Shown in pieces: positions 6,758 to 9,700 of a stretch of DNA of 64,000 bases (position 1 is the stretch's first letter; every line of letters starts with the position of its first letter). This DNA comes from Macrostomum lignano (taxonomy: Eukaryota). The notes under the pieces were generated by a model, which was not told the origin of the DNA, ran no database searches, and worked only from the letters and a program-made list of their open reading frames with translations. The position numbers were made by a program, and so were the translations under genes. Location: assembly GCA_002269645.1 (NCBI GenBank), contig NIVC01002528.1, positions 1-64,000 on the forward strand, read 5' to 3'.

Positions 6758-9700
6758 TCAAGGGCTGCACGTCCACGCAGTTTCCGGCATTTGATTTTCG
6801 TGGCATGAGAATGCTCTGTTGAACACTGGCGAACCTTGGACAGCAAATTCAACCCTGGAAATGTACAAGTTGCAGTTGCAGTACTGCAAATCATGGATCT
6901 TTGAGCAGCAAACATTGAATAACAAATAAATCCACATATCTCATACCTGTTTTTCATCGGAAAATAACTGTCTCTGAGACGAAGTTTATACTTCGCTCGT
7001 TCGGTGCCGCAGTGAGTCTAAAATTCCATTGTCAATTATTTTGTTAAGCCAATAATACTGCTATGAAATTTCATATTAAATAAAGATTTTTCTTACCTGC
7101 GCAAAAGCCATAAACAGCAACTGGTCTGCTGAATAACTCAAGGTTGGCAGGCCCAGCTGCTTGTCTGTTCGCCTCATCAGGTGCATCTCGTGAGCCAGTT
7201 GGGCCACTCGCAGGCCCCAGGCTGTGGCGAAAGCTAAACGAATTGTCGCCTTGGATGTCGTCTGCAGTTTGTTGTTTTTAACGTGGATGCATTGGAAAAA
7301 ATTGTGGGTTTTGACTGTTTGCACCACAGATACTAGAATAACTAGATGAGCCACTCAGCACATTTGCGTGTAAGCTACTTTCAGTTCAGTAGCAAGTTAA
7401 ACGGAAGCATTTTAATGTGTTTTTAAAGCCAAGGCTCATTTATTGGCTCTTACCCCGGCTTAAACCCTCCAACCGCGCCTTTTCACACCCCTCCCCACCC
7501 CAATTTTTATTGCCTTTCTCGGAATTCCAGCCAAAAAGCTGTTATATGTATGTACATTTCAGTGGACTGGCTAATGTACATTATTGCTGAACCAATTAGC
7601 AAGTTGTTTACGCCTGCAAGCTTGGGCTTCTAAGCTTATCAAAGTCATTTCAGCTGCCTATATCTTTTAAAATAGCGTATGCATTCCTCTATTATACATT
7701 GCATTAATACAGTCCCAATTGTGGTTGAGACCGTTTCGACGCTGTTTTGACAGCGTATTCTATTAGTTTTGTTAAATTATAAAAGTCGCTTTCAAGGCTG
7801 ACTATTCTACTCACATCAACAGTAGCCTGTAACGATGCGTAGCAATTCTCAGCTTCTGAGCTGAGCAGTAGAGGCTGCTCGTTGACAGCTAAATCTTCTA
7901 AGCCCGTCCACAGAGAGCCTGAAAATGTTAATTAATAAAGAGTAGCATTTTTGTTGGAGAAAAGTTCACCCCCAAACATAAATTTGAGTTATTTTGGAGA
8001 GTTTTTGTCAATCTATTTTCTCTGCACATGTCTCTCAGTCTTGATCCTATTCCTAATTGATTGCAAGAAGAAAACATTGAATATGCAAATAGAAAACGAA
8101 AGTTTGCCAAAGCTTTTAAAACCTGTCAGAAAAATAATGCTCCTATCATGCAGTGAATTTCTAGTGCAAGAAAATAATACAAAAAACCTAATCAGAAAAA
8201 TTGACTCCAGTCTGGAAAAAAACCGACTCATTCTCTGTCGAAAATGTGAACTGCGCCAGAGAAACACGGGGAGACACAGACGAGGCTTGAAGGACGCAGA
8301 GAGAGGTGACAAATGGAGGCTTGAGTTGTCAGTTTTGCATTGAGCATGTCATGCAGACGCCCCCCCCCCCCCAAAAAAAATATCTACTGACGTCCGTACT
8401 GCAGCAGGAATGGCAGAACAGTGCAGGAAGCTGTCAGGATGAAAAGGTGCATGGAACGGGGCTTGATGCCGCCAATAAAGGAAGCACTTTACAGTAGGCT
8501 AGGGGTTGGGTTGGGGTGACAGAACTGCAGTGGCGCTGGGACAATGGTATGTGCATAGGATAAAAATGCACTTGTATATTTCCTACAACAGCTGAACGAT
8601 ATGCGCCAATTCGTTCGCTGACTCACTCACCGATTGCGTCAAACGCTTTAGTCATTTGCGCTGCTATGGCGGAGCCGATGATGCCAAATTTTAGGTAACT
8701 GCAAAGTCAGAATGGATCAGTAGAATATTTATGGGGACAATTAATTCAGCTTATAATTCGGTATCGACTATTTGTCTATTAGGATACAACCACAGATACT
8801 AGAATAACTAATTTGCGTGTTATATACTTTCAGTTCAGTAGTAAGTTAAACAGAAGCATTTTGGGTCTATGAAATTTGCTTGCGAGAAGTTTGCTTGCGG
8901 GACTTTTGCTTGCGGAAATTTGCTTGCCGAAGTCTGCTTGCCGAACTTTGCCTGCCGAATTTTGCTTGCCGAACTTTGCTTGCCGAACTTTGCTTGCAGA
9001 ATTTTACTTGCCGAAGTCTGCTTGCCGAACTTTGCTTGCGGAATTTTGCCTGCCGAAGTTTGCTTGCCGAGCTTTGCTTGCCGAGCTTTGCTTGCCGAAG
9101 TTTGCTTGCCGAACTTTGCTTGCCGAATTTTGCTTGCAGGAACTTTGCTTGCCGAGATTTGCCAGCCACAGTTTTCTTGCGGAACCTTAGAGAACCTATT
9201 ATTGAGCTCTTGTATTCTAATTTTTGTTTTCTAAGATTCGTGGAAGTCGCCTATAGTGTTATGATTTTGTATGAGGATATGGCGGATTTGAAAAGCCCTA
9301 ATGCAGAACATCGTAAGATAAGATCGTTCTTAGCTCCCATCTCCGTAGTGTAAAAGTTCCGACGTACGATCGAACTTACGCTACGACAGCTTTATATTGC
9401 GACCCCTAAATTCTTAGAATGAAACTCTATAAGCCTAGTTTGAAAGCTTCGTGTCAAGTCAGTTTACGTCGACGCTGATAAGAATCCACTTGCAAAGCAT
9501 CTGTAGTAAGTAATAATTGACGGACCAACTTCACAAGCAATCAAAACAAGCAAGCAGACATTCTAATTCGGCAAGTTAAAACCTTGCAATTGTGATTGCG
9601 AATTTCTAGGAAGCAGACATCAAAATTCCGCAAGTAAAGTTCAGCAAGCAAAGTTCCTGCAAGCAAACGTCGTACTCCCAGCATTTTAATTTATTTTGGC

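Follow-up and report, generated by a model that had tools for sequence, protein, structure and literature searches.

An M13 gene in the first 64 kb of contig NIVC01002528.1

The stretch of DNA analyzed here, called the window throughout, is the first 64 kb of contig NIVC01002528.1 from the genome assembly of the flatworm Macrostomum lignano (GCA_002269645.1). Its minus strand encodes, residue for residue by exact matching, the 818-amino acid protein BOX15_Mlig033059g1, labeled "hypothetical protein" in the database. The database locus of this protein, which covers the first 29,085 bases of the contig, agrees with the window in coordinates and intron lengths. We estimate the probability at about 80% that the protein is a pseudopeptidase, i.e., a member of the M13 (neprilysin/ECE) family of peptidases that has lost catalysis but has been kept by selection. 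An earlier note, made from the letters of the sequence, had proposed a frame-intact M13 homolog from which catalysis has been removed and which selection has kept; this core reading is supported by the loss of the motifs, the predicted fold, a ratio of non-synonymous to synonymous substitution rates (dN/dS) of 0.15, and the absence of coding indels.

Exact mapping of the protein placed the whole coding region (818 amino acids plus the stop codon) at 6758..19085 on the minus strand, in 16 exons. Exons 1 to 4 lie at 19085-18263, 16517-16417, 14043-13876, and 13179-13072; exons 5 to 8 at 12747-12614, 12033-11820, 10893-10792, and 10707-10630; exons 9 to 12 at 10532-10426, 10272-10214, 10123-10066, and 8698-8631; and exons 13 to 16 at 7918-7815, 7261-7097, 7017-6947, and 6854-6758. 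The only stop codon in the coding sequence of 2457 nt is the terminal one, and all 15 introns are bounded by GT and AG. The earlier note had counted 17 exons staying in frame over 12.3 kb; the extent (19085-6758) and the open frame hold, but the number of coding exons is 16. Similarly, the exon that it placed at 8627-8698 is real, but that interval runs four bases into the intron: exon 12 is 68 nt long, with an AG acceptor, a GT donor, and its last codon split across the junction. Its coordinates for the exons carrying VYPSY (10272-10214) and DSYFP (7017-6947) agree exactly with ours.

The introns are also invaded by repeats, as had been remarked. Tandem repeats are present in introns 2, 6, and 11: intron 2 contains a (GACA)n array (15335-16406, 268 units) and a 20-mer array (14129-14427), intron 6 a 16-mer array of 54 copies (10918-11784), and intron 11 a 14-mer array of 20 copies (8871-9155). 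These arrays are the source of most of the length differences among the three genomic copies of the gene described below.

The GenBank gene models of this assembly were built from genome-guided assembly of RNA-seq transcripts (StringTie and TACO) together with a de novo transcriptome, and novel transcripts below 0.5 reads per kilobase per million mapped reads were dropped unless they overlapped de novo transcripts (PMC5730564). Because the annotation is derived from transcripts, the 16-exon chain has transcript support in principle. Three older fragment or fused models of the locus (P0003, P0004, and P0005) were set aside as transcript evidence: no contig is recorded for them, and they resemble alternative predictions. 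In the literature, we found no paper linking Macrostomum with neprilysin or M13 in substance.

Family, fold, and membrane topology

The protein matched both Pfam domains of the family above their curated thresholds, Peptidase_M13_N with an E-value of 1.4e-30 (107.4 bits against a cut-off of 32, with the whole profile covered) and Peptidase_M13 with an E-value of 1.5e-10 (41.5 bits against a cut-off of 24.5). In a phmmer search against solved structures, it retrieved neprilysin (E = 7e-27) and ECE-1 (E = 6e-23). The homology to M13 is thus far beyond chance. An AlphaFold2 model built from an alignment of 124 sequences had a mean predicted local distance difference test (pLDDT) score of 81.6 and a predicted template modeling (pTM) score of 0.80, and most of the ectodomain exceeded a pLDDT of 90. 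When this model was compared with the PDB by Foldseek, neprilysin came first (E = 5e-32, template modeling (TM) score 0.82 on the target), and ECE-1 (TM score 0.85) was followed by the bacterial PepO and Zmp1. Profile alignment and structure prediction, both proposed in the earlier note as checks, therefore place the protein in the family and give a confident model that superposes on neprilysin and ECE-1.

A single membrane-spanning segment is predicted at residues 97-121 (18723..18797, minus strand), which contain the only strongly hydrophobic 19-mer of the protein (Kyte-Doolittle value 2.25); the AlphaFold2 model has a helix at residues 89-120. The basic stretch YRRREK before this segment indicates a type II orientation. 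The predicted layout consists of a cytoplasmic tail of roughly 96 residues, one membrane segment, and a two-lobed M13 ectodomain bearing four N-glycosylation sequons. Together, the sequons, the hydrophobic segment, and YRRREK would fit a type II surface glycoprotein. Ten cysteines (C152, C157, C175, C183, C237, C491, C699, C766, C804, and C816) align with family-conserved columns. Both the membrane segment and the cysteine pattern, noted earlier as kept, are indeed present. At the cytosolic edge of the membrane segment, residues 99-103 read CCCCC (window 18791-18777, minus strand), a cluster that could be a site of palmitoylation.

State of the active site

Residue equivalences were taken from the phmmer alignment with neprilysin and from the alignment of 124 M13 sequences, and the two were concordant. 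In exon 12, the HExxH motif reads AQMTK (8661-8647, minus strand), as the earlier note had stated and as reverse-strand translation and both alignments agree. The zinc ligands His583 and His587 of neprilysin correspond to Ala664 and Lys668, and the general base Glu584 to Gln665. In exon 14, the sequence LAFAT (7223..7237, minus strand), within LAFATAWG, aligns under the ENIAD of GENIADNGG, where the note had seen no clear ENIAD; the third zinc ligand, Glu646, is replaced by Leu717, and Asp650, which acts in the transition state, by Thr721. In exon 15, DSYFP (6958..6972, minus strand) aligns under DVHSP, so that the transition-state residue His711 of the DxHSP motif is replaced by Tyr781, as had been noticed. 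The substrate-docking motif VNAFY likewise reads VYPSY in both alignments (exon 10; 10236..10250, minus strand), with Tyr621 and Pro622 at the positions of Asn542 and Ala543. The C-terminal CxxW motif, which serves folding and maturation, is represented by CSP followed by the stop codon (6758..6769, minus strand), which retains the Cys of the motif but not its Trp.

On these alignments, all of the residues that bind zinc, activate water, or stabilize the transition state are replaced by ones unfit for the job. Each of the four motifs that separate active neprilysins (Nep) from inactive neprilysin-like (Nepl) proteins fails here, namely HExxH, ENIAD, NAF/YY, and CxxW; this criterion, including the definition of CxxW, was established in Drosophila (PMC8223033). 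The family framework is retained in part: 54 of the 103 family columns with at least 70% consensus are kept, among them the ten cysteines, Arg787, Asn629, and several structural Gly and Pro residues. Arg787, in the sequence MKNRV four residues past DSYFP, is the equivalent of neprilysin Arg717, whereas the equivalents of Arg102 and Arg110 read as Val and Gln in the ungapped neprilysin alignment. None of the six frames of the 64-kb window contains HE..H, indicating that the window holds no hidden catalytic exon of the kind that the earlier note had considered.

Genomic copies and purifying selection

The gene is present three times in the assembly, as g1 in the window, as g2 on NIVC01000029.1, and as g3 on NIVC01005169.1. 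The 16 exons and the GT-AG boundaries of all 15 introns are common to the three copies. The coding sequences of g1 and g3 are identical and their introns differ by 21 mismatches; this pair was not taken as a test of selection, as most of the intron mismatches lie within the microsatellite-rich introns 1 and 2. Because no close ortholog was found, we measured dN/dS between the genome's own copies g1 and g2. By the Nei-Gojobori method, this pair differs by 16 synonymous and 8 non-synonymous changes, giving dS = 0.029, dN = 0.0043, and dN/dS = 0.15 (Fisher's exact p = 6.7e-6). The intron divergence of 0.027 matches dS. No indel separates the two copies within the 2457 coding nucleotides, where 5.5 events were expected (P = 0.004), as opposed to 24 events in the introns. 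The earlier note had taken a dN/dS near 1 as the mark of a decaying pseudogene; the ratio is well below that.

The three copies are in keeping with the DV1 genome of M. lignano, which consists of three paralogous subgenome copies with a single-nucleotide polymorphism rate of 2.2% overall and 1.1% in coding sequence (PMC10733133). The divergence between g1 and g2, 0.98% in coding sequence and 2.7% in introns, is in line with these genome-wide figures. The gene thus behaves as an ordinary constrained coding gene, and purifying selection has acted on its coding sequence since the genome's copies diverged. Split by region, with small counts in each, dN/dS was 0 for the tail together with the membrane segment; the N-terminal lobe gave 0.10, and the former catalytic lobe, where five of the eight amino acid differences sit, gave 0.29. 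One of the positions that vary is that of the former third zinc ligand (codon 7237-7235, position 717), which is Leu (TTA) in g1 and Ser (TCA) in g2.

Relatives and similarity to Gone early

A HMMER scan of 1.84 billion representative proteins returned 2859 matches. Aside from two alternative models of the same locus, the best of these, from insects, corals, and a jellyfish, were 22-28% identical, and no relative exceeded 28% identity in this set; a word-indexed search of 5.8 billion clusters returned the self-match only. BOX15_Mlig033059g1 appears in these comparisons as an isolated long branch, and part of this isolation may arise because other Macrostomum species are poorly sampled. Loss of catalysis is common in the M13 family: the full HExxH...E set is likewise missing from 20 of the 123 nearest single-domain relatives. 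The inactive matches include arthropod orthologs of "protein gone early" (Goe) from a crab, a thrips, a beetle, a stick insect, and a katydid.

In a neighbor-joining tree, the protein was sister to a Goe-like inactive clade with a bootstrap value of 75/100, but its branch was twice the median length, so that long-branch attraction is possible. Goe orthology, suggested by this tree and by the resemblance of the motifs, was unsupported in tests of profile preference and clade-specific residues. A profile of the Goe-like clade scored 261.5 bits, as compared with 255 +/- 11 bits for equal-sized profiles of active enzymes, and a profile of arthropod Goe proteins alone scored 193 bits as compared with 223 +/- 13 bits for active enzymes; by contrast, true members of the Goe-like clade favor their own profile by 140-420 bits. 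Only 4 of 31 clade-specific residues were shared, with non-member controls sharing 0-7. Long-branch attraction is the probable cause of the tree position, and catalysis was probably lost independently of the Goe clade.

Comparison with known M13 proteins

Expressed and conserved non-peptidase homologs of M13 have been described in Drosophila and nematodes since 2008 (PMC2259306). In the FlyBase listing, 7 of the 28 Drosophila M13 genes are active and 21 are predicted to be inactive, and the inactive ones are expressed (PMC8223033, PMC2259306). Among the closest known parallels is Drosophila Goe (CG9634, Nepl2) with its arthropod orthologs: like the protein studied here, these are type II membrane M13 proteins in which every key active-site position is substituted (PMC11266112, PMC8223033), and Goe, a characterized membrane-bound M13 pseudopeptidase, acts non-catalytically at the surface of germ cells (PMC11266112). 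The corresponding motif is EAxxD in Goe, whereas it is AQxxK here, and there is no specific sequence affinity to the Goe clade. The earlier remark that inactive M13 homologs are known from other invertebrates, leaving novelty at the level of lineage or function, is consistent with these precedents (PMC2259306, PMC8223033, PMC11266112).

Most Drosophila Nepl proteins are secreted by means of a signal peptide (PMC8223033), whereas BOX15_Mlig033059g1 keeps the ancestral membrane anchor while having lost all four motifs. Nor does it belong to a local tandem expansion, since each of its three copies represents one of the M. lignano subgenomes. With human neprilysin (MME) and ECE-1, the protein shares the order of domains, the topology, the predicted fold (TM scores 0.82-0.85), the disulfide cysteines, and the Arg717 equivalent. 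It differs from them in having only about 20% identity, in the replacement of all catalytic and several substrate-binding residues, in the absence of about 10 residues after the former HExxH helix, and in lacking the terminal Trp.

Dead enzymes that are kept by selection show how the shell of a protease takes on binding or signaling. To our knowledge, the M13 pseudopeptidases with an established role are few, namely Goe, Frma, and Nepl15. The present gene is an unusually clean case, in that the four motifs are gone, the anchor is kept, and purifying selection is measurable. The noteworthy points are the completeness of the loss, the kept anchor, and the isolation of the sequence, none of which would surprise a specialist; on present evidence, the gene extends a well-documented pattern to a further lineage without raising a new question. 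RNA interference, in situ hybridization, and transgenesis are routine in M. lignano, which makes the function directly testable.

Proposed mode of action and alternative explanations

As a pseudopeptidase, BOX15_Mlig033059g1 would be unable to hydrolyze peptides and would act by binding, as an interaction module at the cell surface. The old active site is probably not where partners would bind, because the docking residues Asn542, Ala543, and Arg102 have changed and constraint is weakest in the former catalytic lobe. Contact through other surfaces of the ectodomain, a mode also suggested for Drosophila Goe (PMC11266112), is more likely. In particular, Tyr and Pro at the positions of Asn542 and Ala543 would argue against docking of peptides in the old groove, and trapping of neuropeptides there seems less likely than binding elsewhere.

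Several points weigh against this interpretation as a whole. No expression value, tissue, or phenotype for Mlig033059 was found in full texts of the literature or in the supplements of M. lignano papers. The test of selection draws on only 24 substitutions, as the copies compared are very young (dS about 0.03), and speaks of recent constraint, not of its purpose. Word-indexed and HMMER searches found no close ortholog in which long-term conservation of the replaced residues could be followed. The segment at 671-710, beside the pseudo-active site, is shortened and has low model confidence, and the Leu/Ser change at position 717 hints that the pocket itself may be unconstrained rather than the conserved part. 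Finally, the argument about binding surfaces draws solely on residue changes.

We also considered a peptide trap, membrane-bound or shed: regulatory peptides would still bind in the old cavity and so be kept away from active neprilysins, a role put forward for secreted Nepl proteins such as Nepl15 (PMC8223033). In the predicted structure, the two lobes still close around an intact central cavity, and the Arg717 equivalent is kept together with the FxPAxxxQxPF strand. However, the changes N542Y and A543P remove side-chain and main-chain hydrogen-bond donors for the substrate backbone, Val and Gln stand in for Arg102 and Arg110, and Ala, Lys, and Leu occupy the former zinc site. Moreover, the ratio of 0.29 marks the former catalytic lobe as the least constrained part, and the protein has kept its membrane anchor, whereas most Nepl proteins are secreted (PMC8223033). 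On balance, we regard a trap as unlikely, although it deserves to be kept in mind.

A more speculative form of the pseudopeptidase reading, which we hold to be doubtful, is that the protein is an orphan of the flatworm lineage, a membrane-anchored M13 shell whose active site and groove were rebuilt for a new surface recognition, and that it might regulate germline or neoblast signaling in the manner of Goe, in an animal that serves as a regeneration model. If so, its isolation (at most 28% identity) would reflect fast adaptive divergence followed by constraint. Slightly less probable still is direct orthology to arthropod Goe/Nepl2, with an ancient shared loss of catalysis and a role in germ-cell or stem-cell signaling. 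Goe-family proteins are among the matches, the tree places the protein next to them, and the two have in common a type II membrane topology and the replacement of every motif. Yet neither the Goe-like nor the arthropod Goe profile was preferred, the clade-specific residues shared lie inside the control range, and the tree position is more likely due to long-branch attraction.

That the gene is a decaying pseudogene, i.e., the transcribed relic of an active peptidase whose frame is intact only through recent loss, is highly improbable. In favor of decay, all catalytic residues are lost, only about half of the family-conserved columns survive, neither type of homology search gave a close ortholog, and the texts and supplements of M. 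lignano papers yielded no expression value. Against decay stand the low dN/dS (p about 7e-6) with dS equal to intron divergence, the 0 coding indels versus 24 in introns, and the GT-AG boundaries kept at 15 introns in three copies. In addition, the protein is about 75-80% diverged from all other M13 members, yet its frame is open over 16 exons, with the ten cysteines and a confident predicted fold.

Residual hydrolysis through a non-canonical metal site or other catalytic residues is hardly credible: the old site still has polar residues close by (Gln665, Lys668, Asp671, Tyr781, and Arg787), but the substitutes for the zinc ligands (Ala, Lys, and Leu or Ser) do not bind metal, one ligand position varies between copies, and replacement of the general base Glu by Gln abolishes activity in this enzyme class (neprilysin mutagenesis, summarized in PMC2259306). 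An artifact of annotation or assembly, with a real transcript that carries another, catalytically competent exon, can practically be dismissed: the older models P0003, P0004, and P0005 chain the exons otherwise, by exon skipping or fusion to the next gene, but all of them include the AQMTK exon, HE..H occurs in no frame of the window, three independent genomic copies share the 16 exons and their splice sites, and the current model is derived from transcripts.

Other features of the window

The next gene downstream of the M13 gene lies at about 5696-3843 on the minus strand; its N-terminal part is rich in cysteine, and it also contains a long glycine-rich region. The latter bears a weak resemblance to the glycine-rich domain of ALK/LTK (Pfam E = 0.01, below the cut-off), and an 18-bp repeat at 4764-5097 encodes GGASYR in frame. 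It is this gene that the older model P0005 fuses to the M13 gene. Just upstream of the M13 gene, an open frame at 22530-21883 on the minus strand encodes a hydrophobic segment, a basic tail, and the motif WCSWSDW, which is thrombospondin type 1-like; this frame had no Pfam match.

Beyond these genes, a 2.4-kb array of a 30-bp unit at 25184-27590 precedes an unbroken 25.8-kb array at 28409-54251, which consists of about 1700 copies of the 16-bp satellite CTTCAGTTCACTGTCT. The satellite array has a strong strand asymmetry, with a GC skew of about -0.45 and an AT skew of about -0.57. Near the end of the window, at 61267-63032 on the plus strand, a 21-bp tandem repeat separates two open frames, 125 and 139 amino acids long, which may be exons of a further gene.

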